DNA from: Paraphysomonas bandaiensis | Taxonomy: Eukaryota; Protista; Chrysophyceae | DNA: 64,000 bases | NCBI GenBank assembly: GCA_965644295.1 | Contig: CBFFRP010000178.1 | Coordinates: 37,218 to 101,217, forward strand | Direction of reading: 5' to 3' | Shown here: positions 14,915-52,478 of the stretch, piece after piece | Position numbering within the stretch: the stretch's first letter is position 1 | Layout of the letters: every line of letters starts with the position of its first letter | Notes under the pieces: model-generated | The model's database searches: none | The model's input: the letters and a program-made list of their open reading frames with translations, nothing else | Told to the model about the DNA's origin: nothing | Made by a program: the position numbers and the translations under genes

Positions 14915-17584
14915 TCAGAACGCTTCTTCGCCCATAGAATCATCCGTATGTCCGGCATTTTCGTTTCGTACCACGGTAAAAGCAAGCGTATTGAGCGTAT
15001 TATCGGCACTGATGAGCACTCTGCTGTGGTTCGGAATAGTACCGGCAAACATTCCGCGACTGATTTTCGTTACTAGATGTTTCTCCATATATCGACGAAG
15101 CGGTCGGGCGCCATACGCGGGGTCGTACGACTGCTGTAGCACAAAATCAATAGCTGAGTCATCCATAGCAAGCTGGATATCTCTATCCACAAGTCTCGAG
15201 GCGATAAGACGAAGGTTCATATCTATAATATGGCGTAGCTGCTGCAGCCCCAGAGGATTGAACATAATTATGTCATCCAATCTATTTAAGAACTCTGGTC
15301 GGAAGTTCATCTTAACCTGTTGCATAACGGCTTCTCTTGTTGCATCAGTGATACCACCGTTGGCACCTGAGGTTAGTAGCAACTCCGCTCCAATATTGGA
15401 CGTGAGTATAATAATTGTGTTCGTGAAGTCAACAGTCTTTCCAGTAGAATCAGTAAGCCTACCGTCATCAAGAACTTGCAACAAAATGTTCATAACATTA
15501 CGATGAGCCTTTTCAATTTCATCAAACAGAACCACGTTGTATGGGCGCCGACGAACAGCTTCTGTCAATTGACCACCTTCATCATGGCCTACATAACCTG
15601 GAGGTGCCCCAATTAGTCGTGCCACACTGTGCTCTTCCATATACTCTGACATGTCTATGCGAACGACATGCTTATCGTCATCGAAAAGCTCTCCGGCTAA
15701 AGCTTTAGCAAGTTCAGTTTTGCCAACTCCAGTTGGTCCAAGGAATAAAAATGAACCCAATGGCTGAGTAGGTCTAGACATGCCTGATCTCGAACGTAGA
15801 ACAGCATCTGAGATTGCGTCAATCGCATCTTCTTGTCCCACCACACGGGCTCGAAGTGTCTCGGGTAGATTGAGGAGGCGCTGGTTCTCTGCTTGTGAAA
15901 GTTTACTTGTAGGTATTCCCGTCCAACGAGAAACTACATCAGATATCTGCTCTGGTCCGACTACATCTATTACCAACTTTCCAGCTCCCGTTCCGTCTAA
16001 TTCCATCTCCATTTCACGTTTTTGCTGCTCATCCAAGGCCCGTTTTGCTTTCTTAATTGCTTCTTCCACGCTAGGAATAGCATAGTACTTGAGATCAGCC
16101 GCAATATCCATATTTCTTTTACGTTCTGCATCTTGAAGTTTAAATTTCAGTCCGTCCAACTTTTGTTGCAGTTCGTTCAACTCTCTGACCTTTTCTCTTT
16201 CCATGTCCATGCGGGCTAGTAGTGGACGCAGTTCCTCATGAACTTTTGAAAGTTCAGCTTGAACCTCTGATAAGCGCTGAACAGAACCCTTGTCCTTTTC
16301 CTTGCGTAATGCACGTTCTTCCACTTCAAGTTGAAGGCGTTTACGCTCAAGTTTATCGATTACATCAGGTTGAGAATCGAGCTGTACACGAACGCTTGCA
16401 CATGCCTCGTCTATACAGTCAATAGCTTTATCTGGTAGCTGCCTGTTAGTGATGTATCGATGCGACAGCTTTACTGCGGACACTAAAGCGGAGTCACGGA
16501 TGCGCACTCCATGGTGGACTTCATATTTATCTTTCAGACCACGCAGAATAGAGATCGTGTCTTCGACACTGGGCTCACCGACATACACCTGTTGGAAGCG
16601 CCTCTCAAATGCAGCATCCTTTTCAATATATTTACGATATTCCTCCAAGGTAGTCGCACCAATGCACTTTAGCACCCCTCTAGCTAACATAGGTTTAAGT
16701 AAATTGGCTGCATCCATTGCCCCAGATGTCTTTCCAGCTCCCAGCACAAGATGGAGCTCGTCAATGAAGAGGATAATATTTCCCTCTGCATTTTCAATGT
16801 CCTGCAGCACAGCCTTCAGGCGCTCTTCGAATTCGCCCTGATATTTTGCACCGGCGATTAGGGCCCCCATATCAAGTGAAAATAGGCGACACTGAAGCGA
16901 CTCTGGGACATCTCCTTTCAAGATACGCTGTGCAAGACCCTCCACTATAGCTGTCTTACCGACTCCAGGTTCACCAATGAGGCAAGGATTGTTCTTTCTA
17001 CGCCTGGCCAATACACCAATCACACGTCGTATTTCATCGTCCCGACCAATGACAGGATCAAGTGATCCTTTTTCCGCAGCAGCTGTAAGATCTTGAGCAT
17101 ATTTCGATAGTGCATCATATGTATTCTCTGCTGTACGAGAGGTCACTTTACGATTACCACGTACACTCTTGATAGCATCTTCTAATGCACTACGACTCAC
17201 TCCAAAAGCACTTTGTATATCCCTTATAACACATAAACCAAGTAATAAATGATCAACTGCAATATGTGAATCATTATTCTTTTTTTGTATTTCTTCACTA
17301 GATATGATGACTTTAGTAAAATCAGATGATGGTGGAACTGATTGTGGAGGTGGGGATTGTGATGGTGCCTTCTGTATGATCTTTTGAATTGTTTCAATGA
17401 CTAATAATGGATCTCCACCTGCTCTTTTCAGACAATTGTATGCAAGTTTATGATCATCTTGTAGTAATGCTAATGCTAAATGAGCTGGAAGTAATTGAGT
17501 ATTACCATGTGATTTTGCAAGATCAATTGATGAATTAATAATCTCAGTTGATCTTTCAGTAAAATTTTCTGAATTCATACTCAT
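14915..17584 (-). CDS. HSP101: Cytosolic ClpB/Hsp101/Hsp104 disaggregase, intronless
   Basis: Clp N-domain; two AAA+ modules ([41 protein letters not shown]); coiled-coil M domain; acidic C-terminus. Confidence 0.97.
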
Positions 17585-34766: not shown

Positions 34767-35084
34767 TGTATGTATGTATGTATGTATGTATGTATGTATG
34801 TATGTATGTATGTATGTATGTATGTATGTATGTATGTATGTATGTATGTATGTATGTATGTATGTATGTATGTATGTATGTATGTATGTATGTATGTATG
34901 TATGTATGTATGTATGTATGTATGTATGTATGTATGTATGTATGTATGTATGTATGTATGTATGTATGTATGTATGTATGTATGTATGTATGTATGTATG
35001 TATGTATGTATGTATGTATGTATGTATGTATGTATGTATGTATGTATGTATGTATGTATGTATGTATGTATGTATGTATGTATG

Positions 35085-35115
<31 letters not shown>

Positions 35116-35452
35116 GTATGTATGTATGTATGTATGTATGTATGTATGTATGTATGTATGTATGTATGTTTGTTTGTATGTATGTATGTTTGTATGTATG
35201 TATGTATGTATGTATGTATGTTAGTATGTATGTATGTATGTATGTATGTATGTATGTATGTATGTATGTATGTATGTATGTATGTATGTATGTATGTATG
35301 TATGTATGTATGTATGTATGTATGTACGTATGTATGTATGTATGTATGTATGTATGTATGTATGTACGTATGTATGTATGTATGTATGTATGTATGTATG
35401 TACGTATGTATGTATGTATGTATGTATGTATGTATGTATGTATGTATGTATG

Positions 35453-35483
<31 letters not shown>

Positions 35484-35686
35484 GTATGTATGTATGTATG
35501 TATGTATGTATGTATGTATGTATGTATGTATGTATGTATGTATGTATGTATGTATGTATGTATGTATGTATGTATGTATGTATGTATGTATGTATGTATG
35601 TATGTATGTATGTATGTATGTATGTATGTATGTATGTATGTATGTATGTATGTATGTATGTATGTATGTATGTATGTATGTATGTA
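34767..35686. repeat. (TATG)n microsatellite, about 0.9 kb
   Basis: Directly visible, with few interruptions. Confidence 0.99.
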
Positions 35687-35821
35687 TATGTGTATCTGCG
35701 TGTCCATTGATATCATGTTATGGTCCATATGAAACTCTCTCTTCTCATCACATCTAACAGTATATATATATATATATATATAACACCACTATCAAACATT
35801 AACTTCACAAACAATTCTATC

Positions 35822-38800
35822 ATGTTTACAAGACACATACATCGAATCTATCCATCATATATCAATACACACATCAGATCATATCAAACTCTCCATACTG
35901 GATGGAGGAAACGTAAAGTTGTATTAGTAATCGGCTATATGGGTACACACTATAAAGGATTACAGTACACTCCTTTACCCAACATACCCACTATAGAGAA
36001 TGAACTACAAATAGCTTTATATAAAATTGGATGTATATCAGAATCAAACTTTAAGCACTTAGGTATGTATATGGCTGCATATTCGTATGTATGTATATGT
36101 ATGTATGTGTATATGTCTACCTGAGAGTGTTTATATGTATATATATCTATGTGTATATAAATATATATGTGTATTATAGAGTAAAATTATAAACAATTAG
36201 GTAAAATTGGATGGTCAAGAAGCTCACGTACAGATAAAGGAGTTCATGCCGCTCGATTAGTTATATCAGCAAAATTATTAGTACCACAAGTTACTGATAA
36301 TTTTGATGACTTACTAAAAAAGCTAAATGAAAGTCTACCAAATGACATCCGTGTTTTTTCCTGTATTCGTGTTAATAAGGGGTTTTCTGCACGTAAAGCT
36401 TGTCATTGGAGGTATTTTATTTCCATGTCAGTAGTTCAGTGTGTGTGGATTGTTATGATAGATATGTATTGTCTATAGTCATGTGGTGTGTATTGTATAC
36501 ATGATATTCATATGTAGATTCTATATTTTAAAGTTATATACAGGGAATACGAGTACTTATTACCAACGAAATTAGTACTTAATGAATGGTCACTTATGTC
36601 ATCATTATCTGATGATGAGAGATGGTTACCTCACGCCCAATCTGAAGAGGAGTTTGTGGATAGAATGAATGAAGCTCTTAGATTAATGGAAGGATCCAAG
36701 AGGTTTATATCTATGTATATATGGGTATCTTCTGTATGGATAGTGATTGACCACGACGTACTTGTTGAGTGTATACGTAGTGCTATACATATGAGCTTGT
36801 ATATATAATAACTGTGTATATATAAACTGAACATATCTTATGTATATGTTGTTTGCAGTATGCACAATTTTCACCGTAGGAAACTCCGTAAGAAGTATCA
36901 TGAACCTGGACGTAGTACTCCGAGTAATGATTGTCAAGTACTTCACACGGATAATGATACTCAGAGTGACGTGGACGATAGCGGCCAAAGCGATATTGAC
37001 AATGAAAGTGATACCGAGGATGATGACTCAACCGAACTTATTCCTTCTCAAGAGAATATAAAGTTTTATTCTGATTGGATCCCTGAATTCAATCATAGTT
37101 TAAAACCACACCGAGATTCAAAGTCAATTCCATTAAGTTATCGACCACAGGCAGGAAGCATATATATAGCAGAAGCGTCGGTATTGCCGGTTAGAGAACG
37201 CTCTCCTTTTGCTGAAGAGCCAATGATTAGTATTAGGTTACGAGGGCAGAATTTTCTTTTACAGTAAGTACCTTCATGAATGCAGATCGTGTTTAAATCT
37301 GTCCTGCTCTACATCATGCATCGGATATGATATTCAGTGGTGTTTAGTTGACATTATTACAATTGCTATTATACGGGGGAAATTCCGCATGTTTCAATAG
37401 ATTATCTGTCACCGTTGCTATAGTGATACGCTTACCTACAATGCGCTCTTTATGATACCGTTTGTAGTGTATATAATTCGTGATATATAATAGAAAAAGC
37501 ACGAAAGTGCACGTCAATATAATGTGCTAATCTGAAGTATTTACAGCCAAATTCGCCTTATGGTATCAGCCGCAGTCTTGTATGCGCGGGGGATTATACC
37601 TCTAAGCTGCATTGAAGTGGCAATTGAGTCTCCCTTCAAAATGCACTTTCCTTTAGCCCCTTCACAAGGCCTTCTTTTAGTTACTGCGGGATTCAGCAGG
37701 AATGCTAACAAACAGGTATTACATGTATGTCACGTGTGATGTACAGCATTTTATTGGTAGATCTGTTGTTCATGCAGTCCGATTATTTGTATGTATTATG
37801 TGGCCATTATCGTCACTGTGTGGCAGTAGTGTATTGCTGTACTCCCAGTAGATAGCATGGAATACATGTAATTGTATTGTAGTATACGAAATAATGGGCT
37901 CTTACTACAGGATTACGCGTTGCGGGCTTCGGAAGCTGAGAGTGATGACATAGTAATGCTGTCACATGACGAGAACCGTGTCTGTGAAGAATATCAATTG
38001 GAGCACATATATGCCCGGGTGCTGTCGGATTGGAAGTCAGATGATATGTTTCAAGCTAGAAAGTGGTTTCTTCATTCGGATGATTACGTGGTTAGTCGCT
38101 CTATGGAGAAGACATGGAGAGATATTCTCAGTGATGTAAGGAATACGAGGAAGAAAGATATGGAAATGGAAATTAGTCGTAGAATTCATAGGTATGCAAT
38201 CTACAATTACGTCGTTTGTTATCTTGTTTGTGTATGTATGGCGAGACTTTTGGATTTGTATACTGCCGTGAATGTAATATTTCTAGTATTCAGTATGTGT
38301 TGTAATGTCGTTGCATTTTTCAGGACGCAACTTGCGCTGGAAAAGTATGAAAGCGTAAAGTCATCCGAGGAAGTAATCAAGAGTGGACGAAAGGTTCTTG
38401 GCCATAGAGATTTTTTACCGAATGGCATCGCCACCGAATTGGTAAGTTCGTGACTGTCGTTATACATTGTTCGTCTTTAATTGAAATTGCAGATAAAGAG
38501 GCATCGGCTTCTTCCTTCCGGTACGTGTACACTATACCACAGTTTGTATGTATTTTATAGTGCTATCGTACCGAAAGCTATCGTATATGTATGAAGTTGG
38601 TGTTTTCATAGTATATGTTCTATTAACTCTATGAATAGTAGATGAATATGTTACGTAGAAGCATAAGTACGGCGAATTTAGTGTAGATACGTATATACTG
38701 CTGGTATGTATGACTTGTTTTTTTGCAGGGACTGAAGTGATTGCAATTCTACGGTCTTTGGCATGCAAAATAGCATCTGGAGAAATTCCTTTAGAATATG

Positions 38801-38889
38801 ACGCTGTTCAATTAGCTGATTACGTAGATAATACTGGAGGTTATCAGCATTGGGTTCATAACGAGCCTAAATTAGAATGGATAGTGTAA
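35822..38889 (+). CDS. PUS1: tRNA pseudouridine synthase, TruA/Pus1 family (possible organellar transit peptide)
   Basis: KRKVVLVIGYMGTHYKGLQ, TIENEL, SRTDKGVHA, LPNDIRVF, REYEYLLP, HNF and GQNFLLHQIRLM-like motifs; last exon ends LEWIV*. Confidence 0.9.
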
Positions 38890-41800
38890 TTTTTTAAATA
38901 AGCACTTGTTTGTGTACTACTTTGAAATAAGTCTCCCCTTGAGCGTGACGTATATTATTCTATACTTATTCAATTTCAAATTATTCACTACTGTCAGTCA
39001 TTGTTCAGATTATTCGCGTAGCGGATTCATTTTATTCAAACTAGCGAACTATATCCTCTATCGTACGTCATAAGAAAGCTAAATTGAAAAGTCGCCTTTA
39101 GCGGATTCGTCATAGGCTAAAAATCTACTACACAGATAAATCTAAAAAACTGTACAAAACCAAGGCCTGGTAACCGTTAATGGCCCAGTAATGGTAGTCC
39201 AGTTCCCGGCAATTATAATGGCATTAATGACAATATAGTATGATGATTCATGACGAAGTAATTGCTTAAACACGTGCTCATTATAATTATTACTTCACCA
39301 TGCAGATTTGAATACGTATACCCAAAAAAGCATTCATTGGCGCCACACTGCAACTTACATTCGCTACTTATAGCACCATACTTCGAACACAACCCGGAAA
39401 GTAATTAGTAAATGCCTGGTTACCTTCGCATTCCTCCTCCTGTCCCCGTGAGATTGTCCAGCTCTCGAGATAGGGCGATCGCCTCCTTTTGCAAATGCCT
39501 GGTACAGAAGCTCGTAAACATTTTTTCATTTTACAAGACAGCAACAGTCTACCTTGATTTGGAGTCTATCCAAGCTAAGCTATCATGATGAGTATTCAAA
39601 ACCTCCAGAATCTACAATAGATGTTAATAATTGAAACACTTACGTTACGGTATGATTAAATCCCTTCTGATCCATACCAAGCACAATACTTACTTTAGGA
39701 ATGGAACCGCTTTTACTGGACCCGCCATATTCATCCTCTGACCCATCTACCGCTCCTCCACGACTGTTATTATATTCTTGAACAATTCGCTCCAAATTTT
39801 CGTGCATCTACGCGTAAAATATTTAAAAGTATCCATAGTATTCCACACTGCAGAAAAGTGCTACATGTATATAATATATACCTTAGTAAGATATTGGTCA
39901 AGATCCGCAGCAACTGAGTAGATCTCCTCGCGTGCATATGCGCTTTCGTCAACATCCTATGCAATAATATTAAGAATTTGAGAAACAGGTATTACATGTA
40001 TGTCACGTGTGATGTACAGCATTTTATTGGTAGATCTGTTGTTCATGCAGTCCGATTATTTGTATGTATTATGTGGCCATTATCGTCACTGTGTGGCAGT
40101 AGTGTATTGCTGTACTCCCAGTAGATAGCATGGAATACATGTAATTGTATTGTAGTATACGAAATAATGGGCTCTTACTACAGGATTACGCGTTGCGGGC
40201 TTCGGAAGCTGAGAGTGATGACATAGTAATGCTGTCACATGACGAGAACCGTGTCTGTGAAGAATATCAATTGGAGCACATATATGCCCGGGTGCTGTCG
40301 GATTGGAAGTCAGATGATATGTTTCAAGCTAGAAAGTGGTTTCTTCATTCGGATGATTACGTGGTTAGTCGCTCTATGGAGAAGACATGGAGAGATATTC
40401 TCAGTGATGTAAGGAATACGAGGAAGAAAGATATGGAAATGGAAATTAGTCGTAGAATTCATAGGTATGCAATCTACAATTACGTCGTTTGTTATCTTGT
40501 TTGTGTATGTATGGCGAGACTTTTGGATTTGTATACTGCCGTGAATGTAATATTTCTAGTATTCAGTATGTGTTGTAATGTCGTTGCATTTTTCAGGACG
40601 CAACTTGCGCTGGAAAAGTATGAAAGCGTAAAGTCATCCGAGGAAGTAATCAAGAGTGGACGAAAGGTTCTTGGCCATAGAGATTTTTTACCGAATGGCA
40701 TCGCCACCGAATTGGTAAGTTCGTGACTGTCGTTATACATTGTTCGTCTTTAATTGAAATTGCAGATAAAGAGGCATCGGCTTCTTCCTTCCGGTACGTG
40801 TACACTATACCACAGTTTGTATGTATTTTATAGTGCTATCGTACCGAAAGCTATCGTATATGTATGAAGTTGGTGTTTTCATAGTATATGTTCTATTAAC
40901 TCTATGAATAGTAGATGAATATGTTACGTAGAAGCATAAGTACGGCGAATTTAGTGTAGATACGTATATACTGCTGGTATGTATGACTTGTTTTTTTGCA
41001 GGGACTGAAGTGATTGCAATTCTACGGTCTTTGGCATGCAAAATAGCATCTGGAGAAATTCCTTTAGAATATGACGCTGTTCAATTAGCTGATTACGTAG
41101 ATAATACTGGAGGTTATCAGCATTGGGTTCATAACGAGCCTAAATTAGAATGGATAGTGTAATTTTTTAAATAAGCACTTGTTTGTGTACTACTTTGAAA
41201 TAAGTCTCCCCTTGAGCGTGACGTATATTATTCTATACTTATTCAATTTCAAATTATTCACTACTGTCAGTCATTGTTCAGATTATTCGCGTAGCGGATT
41301 CATTTTATTCAAACTAGCGAACTATATCCTCTATCGTACGTCATAAGAAAGCTAAATTGAAAAGTCGCCTTTAGCGGATTCGTCATAGGCTAAAAATCTA
41401 CTACACAGATAAATCTAAAAAACTGTACAAAACCAAGGCCTGGTAACCGTTAATGGCCCAGTAATGGTAGTCCAGTTCCCGGCAATTATAATGGCATTAA
41501 TGACAATATAGTATGATGATTCATGACGAAGTAATTGCTTAAACACGTGCTCATTATAATTATTACTTCACCATGCAGATTTGAATACGTATACCCAAAA
41601 AAGCATTCATTGGCGCCACACTGCAACTTACATTCGCTACTTATAGCACCATACTTCGAACACAACCCGGAAAGTAATTAGTAAATGCCTGGTTACCTTC
41701 GCATTCCTCCTCCTGTCCCCGTGAGATTGTCCAGCTCTCGAGATAGGGCGATCGCCTCCTTTTGCAAATGCCTGGTACAGAAGCTCGTAAACATTTTTTC

Positions 41801-42258
41801 ATTTTACAAGACAGCAACAGTCTACCTTGATTTGGAGTCTATCCAAGCTAAGCTATCATGATGAGTATTCAAAACCTCCAGAATCTACAATAGATGTTAA
41901 TAATTGAAACACTTACGTTACGGTATGATTAAATCCCTTCTGATCCATACCAAGCACAATACTTACTTTAGGAATGGAACCGCTTTTACTGGACCCGCCA
42001 TATTCATCCTCTGACCCATCTACCGCTCCTCCACGACTGTTATTATATTCTTGAACAATTCGCTCCAAATTTTCGTGCATCTACGCGTAAAATATTTAAA
42101 AGTATCCATAGTATTCCACACTGCAGAAAAGTGCTACATGTATATAATATATACCTTAGTAAGATATTGGTCAAGATCCGCAGCAACTGAGTAGATCTCC
42201 TCGCGTGCATATGCGCTTTCGTCAACATCCTATGCAATAATATTAAGAATTTGAGAAA
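37710..42258. repeat. 2273-bp direct tandem duplication (37710-39982 and 39983-42255)
   Basis: Identical ORFs at a constant offset of 2273; the junction has AAA microhomology. Confidence 0.97.
39189..39226. repeat. Dispersed TAATGG-rich repeat (copy at 41462-41499; inverted copy at 50193-50230)
   Basis: TAATGGTAGTCCAGTTCCCGGCAATTATAATGGCATTA is an exact 38-bp match in reverse complement. Confidence 0.8.
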
Positions 42259-45200
42259 TGTCCCAGCGTGCTGTAAGTAGATATCTGTACACATGGACAA
42301 TAAATGCTTGTCATTATCATGCAGTATTTTCTGTTTAAATTGCAAGATACTAGACGACATCCTACCACGTTCCCAACGCTCTTAAGGTGTTCGTCTACGT
42401 CTCTCGATAACACATCTAGCTCATCATCCAGCTCTCGCTGGTACGTCTGAAATAATGTAAGAATAAGCGACAAAAAGTAAATAGGTGTAGAGATCGGCAA
42501 CAGACATACACTCTGAATTGGCATCTTTCTGCTTGTTATATGTGTACATCTTTTCTCACCTCTATTGCTTGAATGGATCCATCAAGATCCTCCTGGTCCA
42601 CGAGAATCCTATGAACGCTGTCCATCAATCCGTTAAGCTCCTGTGAACAGTTTTGGTAAATACATGATCATATTTTTGAAATAAATTTTATACACTAAGC
42701 AAGCACCAAGTAAACAAACAACATCCCACAACCTTTTGGTTCTCTCTTAACTGCTTGTCCCACGCCGCCACTCGTTTGGACTGCTTCTCATATTCGTCAA
42801 TATCAGCCTTCAGTTGGTCCGTCCAATTGTTGATGATTCCATCAAGTGTCAATGTACTGCAAAACACAGCGTTAGCACATAAACCCGTTCCCATGAACAG
42901 GCTACAAAAAAATATCGATCTTCTATACACATACTCCCTCATAAATTCAAGCGGATAATACCTGTATTCCTGTGAAGACTGAAGGGTGATTCCCGTACTA
43001 GATTTAGTACTCGTATCATTGGCACTAGTTGCAGGTACGGATGAGCTGCTTTGAGTTTGTTTCGAGTCTTGCTGAGTATTGTTGGCGGCCTGACTGGTGC
43101 TAGATGGCAGCGAAAACTTCGAAGCATCAGTGCCACTTTTGCTATCAGGTTTGGTACCTACAAGAAAGCAAATATTAGAGGTGTTATTATCTGCTACCCG
43201 GATGAGCAATGAAATACAACAAAGCAACAAATATAGGCACACACCACCATGTTCAACTGCAATCACATATACGTTTTTACACACATCAACAACTCCCTAG
43301 TCACTGCATAGCTTAAGTGACAAATATAAACATAAACATGAGCTAGAAAACAAAATCATGACATTCATTCCACACTATTGCACCACAGTCAGATATCTGC
43401 ATGCATATGTCAACTTACTTCCAAACCCAAAACTAGTCGGTGCAGTACCAGAACTAGCAGATGCAGCCTTACTATCACCACCTGGAGAAAATATAATCAC
43501 GTATTGTAAATTACACGCGTATCAGCAACAACTTCATGTCATATAATAGTGCAATAATTAAATAACACACCATCAGTAGAAAATAAATCGAATGGAGATT
43601 ACAGAATCACATGCTCCAATGTAATACAAGTACAACCACAAATATCTACACACATATGCCAACTTACCCCCAACCCCAAAACTAGGCTTTGCATCACCAG
43701 AACCACCGGCTGCAGCCTTATTATCACCACCTGTGTGTAACAACAATCACATATACGTTTTCACACACATCAACAACTCCCTAGTCACTGCATAGCTTAA
43801 GTGACAAATATAAACATAAACATGAGCTAGAAAACAAAATCATGACACATTCCACGCTATTGCACCACAGTCAGGTATCTGCATACATATGTCAACTTAC
43901 TTCCAAACCCAAAACCAGGCTTTGCATCACCAGAACCACCGGCTGCAGCCTTATTATCACCACCTGTGTGTAACAACAATCACATATACGTTTTCACACA
44001 CATCAACAACTCCCTAGTCACTGCATAGCTTAAGTGACAAATATAAACATAAACATGAGCTAGAAAACAAAATCATGACACATTCCACGCTATTGCACCA
44101 CAGTCAGATATCTGCATACATATGTCAACTTACTTCCAAACCCAAAACCAGGCTTTGCATCACCAGAACCACCGGCTGCAGCCTTATTATCACCACCTGT
44201 GTGTAACAACAATCACATATACGTTTTCACACACATCAACAACTCCCTAGTCACTGCATAGCTTAAGTGACAAATATAAACATAAACATGAGCTAGAAAA
44301 CAAAATCATGACACATTCCACGCTATTGCACCACAGTCAGATATCTGCATACATATGTCAACTTACTTCCAAACCCAAAACCAGGCTTTGCATCACCAGA
44401 ACCACCGGCTGCAGCCTTATTATCACCACCTGTGTGTAACAACAATCACATATACGTTTACACACACATCAACAACTCCCTAGTCACTGCATAGCTTAAG
44501 TGACAAATATAAACATAAACATGAGCTAGAAAACAAAAACATGACATTCATTCCACGCTATTGCACCACAGTCAGATATCTGCATGCATATGTCAACTTA
44601 CTTCCAAACCCAAAACCAGGCTTTGAATCACCAGAACCACCGGCTGCAGCCTTATTATCACCACCTATATGTAACAACAATCACATATACATTTTCACAC
44701 ACATCAACAACTCCCTAGTCACTGCATAGCTTAAGTGACAAATATAAACATAAACATGAGCTAGAAAACAAAATCGTGACATTCATTCCACACTATTGCA
44801 CCACAGTCAGATATCTGCATGCATATGTCAACTTACTTCCAAACCCAAAACTAGTCGGTGCAGTACCAGAACTAGCAGATGCAGCCTTACTATCACCACC
44901 TGGAGAAAATATAATCACGTATTGTAAATTACACGCGTATCAGCAACAACTTCATGTCATATAATAGTGCAATAATTAAATAACACACCATCAGTAGAAA
45001 ATAAATCGAATGGAGATTACAGAATCACATGCTCCAATGTAATACAAGTACAACCACAAATATCTACACACATATGCCAACTTACCCCCAAGCCCAAAAC
45101 TAGGCTTTGCATCACCAGAACCACCGGCTGCAGCCTTATTATCACCACCTGTGTGTAACAACAATCACATATACGTTTTCACACACATCAACAACTCCCT

Positions 45201-47774
45201 AGTCACTGCATAGCTTAAGTGACAAATATAAACATAAACATGAGCTAGAAAACAAAATCATGACATTCATTCCACGCTATTGCACCACAGTCAGATATCT
45301 GCATACATATGTCAACTTACTTCCAAACCCAAAACCAGGCTTTGCATCACCAGAACCACCGGCTGCAGCCTTATTATCACCACCTGTGTGTAACAACAAT
45401 CACATATACGTTTTCACACACATCAACACTCCCTAGTCACTGCATAGCTTAAGTGACAAATATAAACATAAACATGAGCTAGAAAACAAAATCATGACAT
45501 TCATTCCACGCTATTGCACCACAGTCAGATATCTGCATGCATATATCAACTTACTTCCAAACCCAAAACTAGTCGGTGCAGTACCAGAACCACCGGCTGC
45601 AGCCTTATTATCACCACCTGTGTGTAACAACAATCACATATACGTTTTCACACACATCAACAACTCCCTAGTCACTGCATAGCTTAAGTGACAAATATAA
45701 ACATAAACATGAGCTAGAAAACAAAATCATGACATTCATTCCACGCTATTGCACCACAGTCAGATATCTGCATACATATGTCAACTTACTTCCAAACCCA
45801 AAACCAGGCTTTGCATCACCAGAACCACCGGCTGCAGCCTTATTATCACCACCTGTGTGTAACAACAATCACATATACGTTTTCACACACATCAACAACT
45901 CCCTAGTCTCAGCATAGCTTAAGTGACAAATATAAACATAAACATGAGCTAGAAAACAAAATCATGACATTCATTCCACACTATTACACCACAGTCAGAT
46001 ATCTGCATGCATATATCAACTTACTTCCAAACCCAAAACCAGGCTTTGCATCACCAGAACTAGCAGATGCAGCCTTATTATCACCACCTGTGAGTAACAA
46101 CAATCATATATACGTTTTCACACACATCAACAACTCCCTAGTCACTGCATAGCTTAAGTGACAAATATAAACATAAACATGAGCTAGAAAACAAAATCGT
46201 GACATTCATTCCACACTATTACACCACAGTCAGGTATCTGCATGCATATGTCAACTTACTTCCAAACCCAAAACTGGTCGGTGCAGTACCAGAACTAGCA
46301 GATGCAGCCTTATTATCACCACCTGTGTGTAACAACAATCACATATACGTTGTCATACACATCAACAACTCCCTAGTCACAGCATAGCTTAAGTGACAAA
46401 TATAAACATAAACATGAGCTAGAAAACAAAATCGTGACATTCATTCCACACTATTGCACCACAGTCAGGTATCTGCATGCATATGTCAACTTACTTCCAA
46501 ACCCAAAACTAGTCGGTGCAGTACCAGAACTAGCAGATGCAGCCTTACTATCACCACCTGGAGAAAATATAATCACGTATTGTAAATTACACGCGTATCA
46601 GCAACAACTTCATGTCATATAATAGTGCAATAATTAAGTAACACACCATCAGTAGAAAATAAATCGAATGGAGATTACAGAATCACATGCTCCAATGTAA
46701 TACAAGTACAACCACAAATATCTACACACATATGCCAACTTACCCCCAAACCCAAAACTAGTCGGTGCAGTACCAGAACCACCGGCTGCAGCCTTATTAT
46801 CACCACCTGTGTGTAACAACAATCACATATACGTTTTTACACACATCAACAACTCCCTAGTCACTGCATAGCTTAAGTGACAAATATAAACATAAACATG
46901 AGCTAGAAAACAAAATCATGACATTCATTCCACACTATTACACCACAGTCACATATCTGCATGCATATGTCAACTTACTTCCAAACCCAAAACTAGTCGG
47001 TGCAGTACCAGAACTAGCAGATGCAGCCTTATTATCACCACCTGTGTGTAACAACAATCACATATACGTTTTCACACACATCAACAACTCCCTAGTCACT
47101 GCATAGCTTAAGTGACAAATATAAACATAAACATGAGCTAGAAAACAAAATCATGACATTCATTCCACACTATTACACCACAGTCACATATCTGCATGCA
47201 TATGTCAACTTACTTCCAAACCCAAAACTAGTCGGTGCAGTACCAGAACCACCGGCTGCAGCCTTATTATCACCACCTATGTGCAACAACAGTCAATCTC
47301 ACTATCACAATACGAGATTGAAGAAAAGTGTAGCATGACATTCTCATGAAACATACACCCTTTTCGTTCATAGTTATAAACTATGGACATATACTCAACC
47401 CACCTGCAAATCCAAAACTACCTGTCGATGTTGAAGTGGAGCCTATAAACAAATAACAGTTATGTACACTGAAGCAACCAACAATATATATATACATATA
47501 CGTCACACCATCTATGTATATATACACATATATACACTATCAGTTACAATGTTTTTCTACTTACCCCCTCCAAATGAAGGTGTTGATGCTCCTCCTGTCA
47601 TACATACATTAATATATACACACATACATATATATATACATACATACATACTACACACAGACATATACATACATACATCTCATTACCTCCAAATGAAAAC
47701 GATGAATTCGTCCCCGTCCCACCTGATGTACTGCTTTTAGCAGGTGTTCCACTACCTCCAAAATTAAAACTCAT
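41693..47774 (-). CDS. NUP62: FG nucleoporin Nup62/Nsp1
   Basis: N-terminus MSFNFGG; FG-repeat exons; Nsp1_C-like coiled coil TLDGIINNWTDQL...VAAWDKQLRENQK, AREEIYSVAADLD, ILEVLNTHHDSLAWID; stop at 41695-41693. Confidence 0.92.
43260..47290 (-). repeat. Tandem exon+intron array (233-249-bp units) carrying 17 FG micro-exons
   Basis: Each unit is AG|63-bp exon|GTAAGT plus an intron. The outermost exons are 43419-43481 and 47214-47276. Confidence 0.95.
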
Positions 47775-48405
47775 TTTATTAATAAGATAGTGTATAGTTA
47801 GTCTAGTGTGGTAATAGTGGTATGTGTTGAGTGGTATGTGTATATATATGTACCATACAGAGAGAGGCAGGTACATAGTGCTACATATACATACATGTAC
47901 CATACATACACATACTGCTGTACATATATACGTATAGATACATATACCATACCATACATACTGCTGTACATACGTATACATACATATACATACATGTACA
48001 TACATACTGCTGGACATCCACTGCTGTACCTACCATACAGCAGTGTGTATATATATATTACGATTGTACTACTTATGTATGTACTGCTGTACTGCATTAT
48101 ATGTACTGATGTACGACTATAGGTTCTAGAGTTAGACTCTGTGTACCCATACATATTTATATACACAGACTACATCACACAACCACCACATATCACTCTT
48201 CAAAATACTAGCCAATGAAAAGACTTTATACTTACAGGAAGGAAAATGATTTGTTTACATGTCTCTGAGGTGGTGTATATAACACTGCTGCTGTCTGTCT
48301 ATATGCACTTAACTATGCAAAGCAGGTAGGTATATATATGCATTCATATATAACAATAGAAGGTTAGATTGATACATATTCCACCTACTATCACTTATTT
48401 CAACA

Positions 48406-49721: not shown

Positions 49722-50604
49722 GATATCAAATAATCATGTGTGGATGCATAGATAGAAGACATTTCTAAATGGAATACAACGGGAAATGTATTGTAGTGTG
49801 AGAAATGTATGTGTTATAGATGACATAGATGTTACAACAAATAGGTTTAACTTTCTTAAAGTAGTCTATTGCCAGAGCTGTGTAACTGTACTCAGTTTAA
49901 CTCTTTCCACCTTTCAACTTTATCATGCATGCATGAGTGTAGAAAAAATAGACCATAAGCCTCTGATGTTACTTTTAATTAATATAATAGGTTGTAATAT
50001 TAACTATGATAATTGATTGTCGAAAATACTTTCTTGTGTAGTAGAATAAATTACTAGCTTTATTACTGAATATTATATAAAATATAAGTAATGAGTGATA
50101 TATATATGAGTTGAGATAGTTTTCATTTAGCATTGCTTGTTCCATTGCTGTAAGTATAACCGCTAATGGTAATGGCATTAATGATAATGCGGTAATGCCA
50201 TTATAATTGCCGGGAACTGGACTACCATTAATGGATAAGAGGTCCTGGATCATATCTTTCAATATACTACTCCTATAAGAACTGCAAATATGTAAAAACA
50301 ATTTCCCATGTATCTTTATTACATGTGCCACCTCGAATCATATATTGCGAATATCAGGCAAACATAACTTATATAACAGACACGTATAATACGAGTCACC
50401 GAAATTTACTTCTTAGCAACGGATTACCACTCCACTGCATCATCTTGTCAACAACCAACAGTGTGTACTATCTTTTAAAATACACCACTATCACTACATT
50501 ATCATGCCAAACTGTAGCATTATTCCATTTCAATTGACTAAACGCGTGCAACGAACGGCGTGTCATATATTCTTTATGGCTGTACTAGATTAGAAAATCA
50601 ACCC

Positions 50605-52102
50605 TTAGTAGGGCCTCCTTTCCCCTCTACCTGGAGACCTCGAGCGACGTCTTCTACTGCTGCTGCGGTCCCCATCCCGATCCCTGCTGCGAGCTCTCTT
50701 CCGATCTGGAGGCCCGTAGTGGGACTCCCCTCCTCGTGCTCGAGAGTCATCCCGGGGTCGGTCTCGCCCACCTCTTTCCCGGCTGCGACCACTGCCACGA
50801 GACCTATCCTCACGTGATCTGTCTTCTCGCCTATCACGACTCCGACTCCTTCGTGCACCCCCAGAATCCCTTCCTCTATCCCTTGCACCTCTATCAGGAG
50901 GAGGGGCATATGCAGAGCGGGTAGCATTCTCTTGTAGTGCTTTTAGCTGCTCTTCAGCAATTTCTTTCTTGCTTTTCTGAGGTCGACGTCCACCTAGACC
51001 ACCACCAAACCGACGAGGACGCCATTTCTGAACAGTTCTAAAAATAATATTAGGAAGTCAGTAGGATAACTTGCAGTCATTACTTCATACAGCGTTCTAT
51101 CATACACACATATATATATATAACACTAGTTTATTCCCGGTATACCTTCCTCTCTCTACATCAACAAGTATACGTCTTCCATCAATCTTTTTACCATCCG
51201 CACGTTTATATGCCATTGTCATATCTTCTTCTCTTTCAAACTCAATAAATGCATATCCTCTTGGTTTCCCATTATTATCTAGTACTAATTTAACTGTACG
51301 TATTGGACCATATTGTTCAAATTCACGTCGTAATTTTTTTTCAGATGTATCATATGATAATCTTGCAATAAATAATGTACTATATGCATTCCTGTATATA
51401 TAAAAATATTAATATATACATATATACATATATATACATATACATACTCTGTAGCTTTAAAGTTACGTTTTGGATCCCAATCAATAATTAAAAGTTCATT
51501 TTTTTCTTGATTTGATTTCATTAATTGTTCACTTAAACGTTTTTTACGTTCTTTAGGATTTTCTACAATTGGTTTTTCTGGAGTTTCTTTTTCAAATAAT
51601 GGAATATATTGACTGATTCCTGTATATGGGGGCATTTTACGTTTTGTCATAGGAGGTTTATGAGGTAATGGAGGACGTGGTTCGAACATCATCTTCATAT
51701 CTATGAAAAAATGAAGTGAATAATTCAAATACGTATATATGAATATGTTAATAGTAAGAATTATTGCATGTTAATATACGTATATCTAGCAGTGTCATCT
51801 CTATAGGTACATATACGCATATATACGTGCATATAGATACATATATAGAGAGACATACATATCAACATATACATACATGCATATACGTCAATATACATAT
51901 ATAAGCATATCAATTTAACATACTTGGAGGAAGATCACTCAATGGTGGACGTTGATTGGCTCCTGCAGACATCTGACCTCTTGGCTGTATTCACTTACTC
52001 ATAAGCTCATATATATATACATGCATAAGAACTAACCGTCATCTTCCTATCTCCACCTCCTCGGCCACCTGCGGGAGGGTCTCGAGAGCCAGGGCCGTAC
52101 AT
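50605..52102 (-). CDS. SNRNP70: U1 snRNP 70 kDa protein
   Basis: [67 protein letters not shown]|[15 protein letters not shown], and an RS/RD-rich tail. Confidence 0.96.
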
Positions 52103-52188
52103 GATTGAGGTTTATTGCAATATGGTTGACTGTAATGTGTGCTGTGGTTGCATATACATAATCTAACATCAATAGACAGCTTCATATG

Positions 52189-52191
<3 letters not shown>

Positions 52192-52222
<31 letters not shown>

Positions 52223-52400
52223 TGTATGTATGTATGTATGTATGTATGTATGTATGTATGTATGTATGTATGTATGTATGTATGTATGTATGTATGTATG
52301 TATGTATGTATGTATGTATGTATGTATGTATGTATGTATGTATGTATGTATGTATGTATGTATGTATGTATGTATGTATGTATGTATGTATGTATGTATG
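52192..52400. repeat. (TATG)n microsatellite between divergent genes
   Basis: Directly visible. Confidence 0.99.
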
Positions 52401-52478
52401 TGTGTGGATGGTTGGGTTTTATGGTTATTCTTCTATTAGATTCATTTGTATCTCCATAGAATCAGTCTACCCTACTAT

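Follow-up and report, generated by a model that had tools for sequence, protein, structure and literature searches.

How does the phenylalanine-glycine (FG) domain of a nuclear-pore protein come to be divided, repeat by repeat, into near-identical exons, and does the number of those exons vary? These questions are raised by a locus of the chrysophyte Paraphysomonas bandaiensis, contained in a stretch of 64,000 nucleotides (nt) from assembly GCA_965644295.1 (contig CBFFRP010000178.1, positions 37,218 to 101,217 of the forward strand; hereafter the window, to whose numbering all positions refer unless another contig is named). Its minus strand carries a Nup62/Nsp1 gene with 17 tandem exons of 63 base pairs (bp), each encoding one FG repeat of 21 amino acids (aa). 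FG-repeat number and spacer chemistry are thought to set nuclear-pore selectivity and have usually been studied by engineered truncations. The FG domain described here is unusually regular, its spacers being of either a charged (DAKPG) or an uncharged (TAPTS) type, and is divided into identical frame-neutral genomic modules for which recent gain and reshuffling are clear. We consider that the locus as a whole is best explained by a single Nup62/Nsp1 gene with 17 constitutive FG mini-exons, recently amplified by unequal crossover or slippage, and we give this reading a probability of roughly four in five.

The array and its gene

Repeat finding with Tandem Repeats Finder identified one array at 43260-47295 (period 235, 17.0 copies, 85% matches, score 5519) and no second long-period array in the 64-kb window; the unit was found at a single locus in the assembly of 62.6 megabases (Mb) and 669 contigs. 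The coding sense of the array is the minus strand, the plus strand being C-rich there. A scan of the minus strand for the pattern AG + 63 nt + GT[AG]AG yielded exactly 17 cassettes, from 47276-47214 down to 43481-43419, all of which are open, share one common phase and encode a 21-aa FG repeat. This recovered the 17 phase-1/1 exons that a preliminary description, made from the letters alone, had proposed. That description also held that each exon was amplified together with its intron, which is borne out by the 235-bp unit present in 17.0 copies: what is repeated, head to tail, is a whole exon and a whole intron (AG acceptor, 63-nt exon, GTAAG donor, 170-186-nt intron). The unit is not uniform, however, as three copies measure 249 bp rather than 235 and contain a different intron, of 186 nt, which shares 68% identity with the usual one of 172 nt. 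This longer intron always lies between a G-ending cassette and a GDSK cassette (pairs 3-4, 10-11 and 16-17), forming a higher-order pattern. Differences among the exons fall into two blocks, the first reading AAGG or ASAS and the second GDAKPG or GTAPTS, and all four block combinations are present (types aD, sT, aT and sD). A chance origin of the array is excluded because 17 of 17 units keep both splice sites and the frame and because RNA-derived contigs carry exon-exon joints.

The gene model was built by joining the cassettes to neighbouring exons through canonical GT..AG sites (Table 1). About 357 of its 678 predicted residues come from the 17 cassettes, which agrees with the contribution first proposed, and FG-type motifs (FGG, FGFA, FGFG, FGLG and FGVG) are spread across residues 1-411, upstream of the coiled coil. 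The frame neutrality noted earlier for the cassettes extends to two upstream FG exons of 30 and 39 bp, such that 19 exons in a row (exons 2-20) enter and leave in phase 1. Joints 20-21, 21-22 and 22-23 of the model are present in RNA contigs; exons 1-3 and 24-28 are predicted.

Pfam and PDB searches, run exon by exon, place the gene in its family. Exon 22 alone (41 aa) matches the Pfam domain Nsp1_C (PF05064) over profile positions 17-53 of 114, scoring 38.5 bits (cut-off 24.1; E = 1.1e-9). Its ten PDB sequence matches are without exception chains of Nsp1 or Nup62; yeast Nsp1 (7n85_A) ranks first, at E = 0.0075, a value that is weak alone and was obtained with a 41-aa query. Exons 23-26, taken singly, gave no matches in the Pfam and PDB searches, and a six-frame search of the whole assembly detected no other Nsp1_C locus above the cut-off. 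Because of the Nsp1_C score, the restriction of PDB matches to Nsp1 and Nup62, and the presence of only one locus above the cut-off, we assign the gene on sequence grounds as the single orthologue in this assembly of Nup62/Nsp1, the central-channel FG nucleoporin, in line with the identity first suggested. The gene is like vertebrate Nup62 and fungal Nsp1 in its N-terminal FG domain, Ser/Thr-rich linker and C-terminal Nsp1_C coiled coil. The start of vertebrate Nup62 resembles the MSFNFGG found here, and the cassettes, which repeat regularly at about 20 aa and have spacers containing D/K, resemble the FxFG repeats of yeast Nsp1. As a protein, it is a conventional Nup62/Nsp1 whose repeat is very regular.

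A second FG-repeat gene is present in the assembly, on contig C645 (76080-77855, minus strand; L011-L014), and scores above the cut-off for Pfam Nucleoporin_FG. Its repeats lie in one intronless open frame of 957 aa, unlike the Nup62 cassettes, and the cassette layout is therefore no general property of the FG genes of this genome.

Splicing and the length of the FG domain

The duplicated cassettes are spliced into messenger RNA (mRNA) at the predicted borders. This was observed in contigs of four public runs placed on 42650-47597, namely X14 and X15, which are transcriptome-like, X17, a polyadenylated (polyA) marine metatranscriptome, and X5, a DNA run that shares its species label with X14 and X15. 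In all three RNA-type runs, position 42856 is joined to 42962 (105 nt skipped, with GT..AG ends), exon 22 runs on into exon 23, and an sT-type cassette has its 3' end joined to exon 21 where the model places the border. In two other joints and in 8 of 13 loose ends, the 3' end of one cassette (...GGGTTTGGAA or ...GGGG) abuts directly on the 5' start of another (GTGGTGATA...); those reading ...GGGTTTGGAA followed by GTGGTGATAATAAG... fall exactly on predicted cassette borders. The sole intron-containing contig of X14 has a depth of about 3, as against about 640 for the exon contig, making intron sequence some 200 times rarer. Contigs of the DNA run X5 contain no exon joints in the same interval, and its array contigs, which are collapsed, exceed the flanking single-copy contig in depth by a factor of 2.4 to 8.6. 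This multi-copy depth indicates that the amplification is real in an independent data set or another strain.

These data fit a gene in which each 63-bp exon specifies one 21-aa unit, made up of a short Asp/Lys- or Ser/Thr-containing spacer and then an FGFG motif, and has an intron of its own, about 172 nt long, behind it. In this reading the cassettes are ordinary exons spliced one to the next, most likely all included in one mRNA, and they lengthen the FG domain by some 17 additional FGFG motifs.

Several points weigh against this reading. Two of the three RNA-type runs were labelled RNA by guess, although their intron-less contigs show that they derive from complementary DNA (cDNA). RNA support begins at the cassettes, leaving exons 1-3 and the joint between exon 3 and cassette 1 to the sequence model, and the RNA evidence consists of short-read contigs, which collapse repeats and drop rare isoforms, such that the number and order of cassettes per mRNA and the inclusion of any single cassette lie beyond their resolution. 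The count of 17 units comes from a single assembly, and X5 and X15, with the same species label, as well as X17 differ from the window by single bases. Finally, one joint (46744 to 46087) connects a G-ending, cassette-3-like end to a GDNK-AAS start, a pair that is non-adjacent in the assembly; one base, AGT changed to AAT in cassette 4 of another strain, would be enough to account for this joint.

That joint is among the observations favouring a different proposal, present in part in the preliminary description, in which cells or strains would skip exons, or often gain and lose units, and in this way vary their number of cassettes and adjust pore permeability. The structure of the gene would permit such tuning, as exons 2-20 are all phase 1/1 and 63 = 3 x 21, which keeps any subset in frame, while the mosaic exons and the higher-order pattern point to repeated unequal exchange in the past. 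By a rough figure, the unit with the 186-nt intron also has about 2.4 times single-copy depth in X5, compared with three copies in the assembly. However, the unexpected joint needs only the one-base change given above, every cassette donor is a strong GTAAGT site, and in the RNA contigs of X14, X15 and X17, which drop rare forms, none of the joints connects exon 21 directly with exon 3 or an exon farther upstream, which would bypass the array. Apparent skips of 3821, 4056 and 1604 bases were rejected as exon skipping, as their matched 31-55 letters are identical in several cassettes and their placement is ambiguous. The suggestion that FG length is tuned by skipping was thus not upheld, all non-adjacent joints tracing to identical cassettes or to a one-base strain difference, and we regard the adjustment of permeability by cassette number as unlikely.

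The broader proposition that the array is a frame-neutral, fast-evolving module, with a unit number that varies among strains and/or exons that are skipped, making FG length a variable trait that affects pore selectivity, is also one we consider unlikely. The evidence supports unequal crossover, with units gained and lost, in the past of the array and not as a source of variation today. If strains were to differ in unit number, nature would provide versions of one protein that differ in nothing but FG length, and a variable array would supply naturally occurring alleles with which to test how the permeability barrier depends on FG copy number.

Table 1. Positions of the array, its cassettes and the remaining exons of the gene in the window, in order of transcription within each group
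Feature	Position	Strand	Basis
Tandem array, 17 exon+intron units (235 bp; three of 249 bp)	43260..47295	-	Repeat finding, cassette scan, assembly search
Nup62/Nsp1 orthologue, 28 exons, 2037-nt coding sequence, 678 aa, all introns GT..AG	41693..47774	-	Model from sequence
Exon 1, MSFNFGG...SFSFG, ends in phase 1	47687..47774	-	ATG, then GTAATG donor; predicted
Exon 2, 30-bp phase-1/1 FG exon, GGASTPSFGG	47565..47594	-	AG acceptor, GTAAGT donor; predicted
Exon 3, 39-bp phase-1/1 FG exon, GSTSTSTGSFGFA	47404..47442	-	AG acceptor, GTGGGT donor; predicted
Cassette 1, aT, GDNKAAAGGSGTAPTSFGFG	47214..47276	-	Cassette scan
Cassette 2, sT	46979..47041	-	Cassette scan
Cassette 3, aT, G-ending, then 186-nt intron	46744..46806	-	3' end joined to GDNK cassette start in X14 and X15 RNA contigs
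Cassette 4, sT, GDSK	46495..46557	-	Cassette scan
Cassette 5, sT	46260..46322	-	Cassette scan
Cassette 6, sD, mosaic	46025..46087	-	Covered by RNA contig running into next cassette start (loose end 46023)
Cassette 7, aD, GDNKAAAGGSGDAKPGFGFG	45790..45852	-	Cassette scan
Cassette 8, aT, mosaic	45555..45617	-	Covered by polyA metatranscriptome X17 contig (45553-45612)
Cassette 9, aD	45321..45383	-	Cassette scan
Cassette 10, aD', ...PSFGLG, G-ending, then 186-nt intron	45086..45148	-	3' end joined to GDSK cassette start in RNA contigs
Cassette 11, sT, GDSK	44837..44899	-	Cassette scan
Cassette 12, aD, GDSKP variant	44602..44664	-	Cassette scan
Cassette 13, aD	44367..44429	-	Cassette scan
Cassette 14, aD	44134..44196	-	Cassette scan
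Cassette 15, aD	43901..43963	-	Covered by X17 contig; next cassette start is a loose end
Cassette 16, aD', ...PSFGVG, G-ending, then 186-nt intron	43668..43730	-	Loose end GGGTTTGGAA just upstream of 43730 in X14 and X17, a cassette-to-cassette joint
Cassette 17, sT, GDSK	43419..43481	-	Joined to exon 21 in X14 (43154|43416, cut +3, plus-strand CT..AC, i.e. GT..AG)
Exon 21, 65-aa Ser/Thr/Gln-rich linker, ends ...QEY + 2 nt	42962..43157	-	Joint 42856|42962 in all three RNA runs, not in DNA run X5
Exon 22, start of Nsp1_C coiled coil, LDGIINNWTDQLK...AAWDKQLRENQK	42733..42856	-	Pfam PF05064, PDB matches
Exons 23-28, remaining C-terminal coiled-coil region and stop codon	41693..42640	-	Exon 23 after exon 22 in RNA contigs (255-letter loose end at 42732); rest predicted

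Cassette 17 contains a single-base difference at window position 43440, where G is replaced by A on the plus strand (CCG, Pro, to TCG, Ser); the change is present in the DNA run X5 and the RNA run X15 and absent from X14, all three having the same species label.

History of the array

Divergence among the units differs between introns and exons. In 13 units the intron measures 170-172 nt; among these introns identity is 95-100%, with divergence averaging 2.8%. Identity among the three 186-nt introns reaches 99-100%, but is about 68% when they are compared with the common type. Divergence among exons is higher, with a mean of 9.3% and a maximum of 17%, and between types aD and sT ten of ten differences change amino acids. 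Intron variants near the 5' end partly track the type of the upstream exon. Because the introns are near-identical (95-100%, and 99-100% in the 186-nt type), we take the array to be a recent amplification. The exons are mosaics of two older half-exon types, and introns that are more alike than exons point to recombination among older exon types. Exon divergence exceeds intron divergence (Fisher p about 0.001), but positive selection on the exons is not claimed: these figures are also explained if the exon types are old and the introns were amplified recently. Spacer diversity may have been selected for, although the data do not require it.

The starting point of this history was probably an older two-cassette module consisting of an aD' cassette, a 186-nt intron, an sT cassette and a 172-nt intron. 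Recent expansion would have occurred through repeated unequal crossover or replication slippage in the 235-bp register, and crossovers with breakpoints inside exons would have generated the mosaic cassettes aT and sD. Unequal crossover as the source of the array fits both the mosaic exons and the higher-order pattern. Units 13-15, which are 99-100% identical, would be the youngest.

This same near-identity of units 13-15 makes them hard to assemble, and the array might be real but its length of 17 units an artefact, through over-expansion or collapse of a tandem repeat in the one assembly from which the count is taken; a perfect 2273-bp tandem duplication just downstream could be an assembler artefact too. 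Against this, private variants in most units (22 variable intron columns together with the distinct exon types) anchor the order of the units, the array contigs have multi-copy depth in the independent DNA run X5, and several distinct cassette and junction types are present in RNA contigs. An artefactual length is therefore, in our judgement, improbable.

The high similarity of the introns, set against exons that differ by up to 17%, could also indicate that the introns are the selected part, each unit hosting an intronic RNA such as a small nucleolar RNA, with the exons being secondary. However, the array contains no Rfam match even at E <= 1, and shuffled sequences fold as well as the 172-nt intron does (z = 0.05). 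Frame and FG motif are preserved in each of the 17 exons, which are plentiful in mRNA contigs, whereas intron sequence is so much rarer there. At E <= 1 the Rfam search returned just microsatellite-driven, microRNA-like chance matches outside the array, far below gathering scores. We regard an intronic RNA as a highly improbable explanation and retain that of constitutive, recently amplified FG exons.

Relatives, known systems and neighbouring genes

Comparison with related Nup62 genes, which the preliminary description had recommended, indicates that the layout is lineage-specific. A profile-free exhaustive search with exon 22 returned 13 proteins at E <= 0.001, comprising 12 exon-sized fragments (48-116 aa) and one protein of 2344 aa (P0003). 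Eight fragments were traced to ten contigs, of which seven were read; these are metagenome contigs of uncultured protists. In three relatives the repeats lie in one long exon: L023 (56% identity in exon 22) has its FG repeats in one open exon of >430 aa that ends ...AEYR, with the intron position as in P. bandaiensis; L026 (51%) has a short upstream FG exon and then one open exon of >430 aa with 20-24-aa AADKAA...GGFGFG repeats, similar in spacer style to those of P. bandaiensis, and the ...AEYR end at the same position; and L022 (57%) is intronless in the part of the gene covered by its contig. L019 (68%) has exons of 2-3 FG motifs each. In L020 (66%), three consecutive phase-1 exons of 63, 57 and 54 bp are separated by 35-38-nt introns that split F|GFG instead of following FGFG. 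Both L020 and P. bandaiensis thus have short phase-1 FG cassettes, but those of L020 are mutually diverged, with tiny introns at another position. The upstream sequence of L021 and L025 (54% each) is too short to judge. The intron after ...EYR is conserved in L019, L020, L023 and L026.

The L020 contig (1-292) ends within its run of short phase-1 FG exons, and more units may follow at the break.

Judged by these comparisons, one repeat per exon is a derived, lineage-restricted state. Exons 2-3 here and the diverged cassettes of L020 show that it predates the recent amplification, and more than one origin is possible. A search of metagenome contigs with exon 21, the read-through intron and exon 22 as query, and with a degenerate cassette pattern, gave no matches, which says little. 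For genome evolution, the locus is a clear case of introns multiplying through tandem duplication of exon and intron, in a gene whose related species keep the repeats in one exon.

The FG domain is encoded by one exon in yeast Nsp1 and, as we understand it, in mammals. P. bandaiensis differs from these in giving each repeat its own exon and intron, with near-identical DNA that includes the introns. Tandem arrays of symmetric exons are known from the 54-bp exons of fibrillar collagens, the PEVK exons of titin, nebulin and NBPF/Olduvai, and share with the present array an exon+intron unit amplified by unequal crossover, symmetric phase and higher-order super-repeats; alternative splicing or copy-number variation is documented for several of them. 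To our knowledge, none of these four is a nucleoporin. The gene architecture described here is a clean, previously undescribed case within a known class: full-text literature searches gave no paper in which exon duplication, or an exon for every repeat, is connected with a nucleoporin, which agrees with the earlier statement that none was known for Nup62. A published analogue is chicken Muc13, whose authors likewise propose that a repeat domain organized in this way could vary. There too a disordered low-complexity repeat domain, normally in one exon, is split to one repeat per exon. Muc13 differs in family, function and organism, and the nucleoporin array is more homogeneous and has its splicing documented by contigs only.

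Immediately downstream of the array, the window contains a perfect (100% identical) tandem duplication of a 2273-bp unit, at 37710-39982 and 39983-42255. This unit holds the last four Nup62 exons (25-28, stop codon included) and 3' flank, with its junction in intron 24; in the direction of transcription, the first copy completes Nup62 and the second is a partial downstream copy. The duplication is either a very recent event or an assembly artefact. Long (TGTA)n/(CATA)n microsatellites of up to 232 copies are present at 34767-35695, 52185-52405, 47599-47678 and 47882-48017, and one sits inside Nup62 intron 1.

The organism is a marine protist and probably heterotrophic; genes for light-harvesting proteins were searched for and none was found. 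Just upstream of Nup62, also on the minus strand, lies a U1 snRNP 70K-like gene (about 50600-51770), recognized in six-frame translation by an RRM exon and an Arg/Ser/Asp-rich tail. Further along the same strand, at 14918-17584, is an intronless gene for an 889-aa AAA+ chaperone of the ClpB/Hsp101 type.

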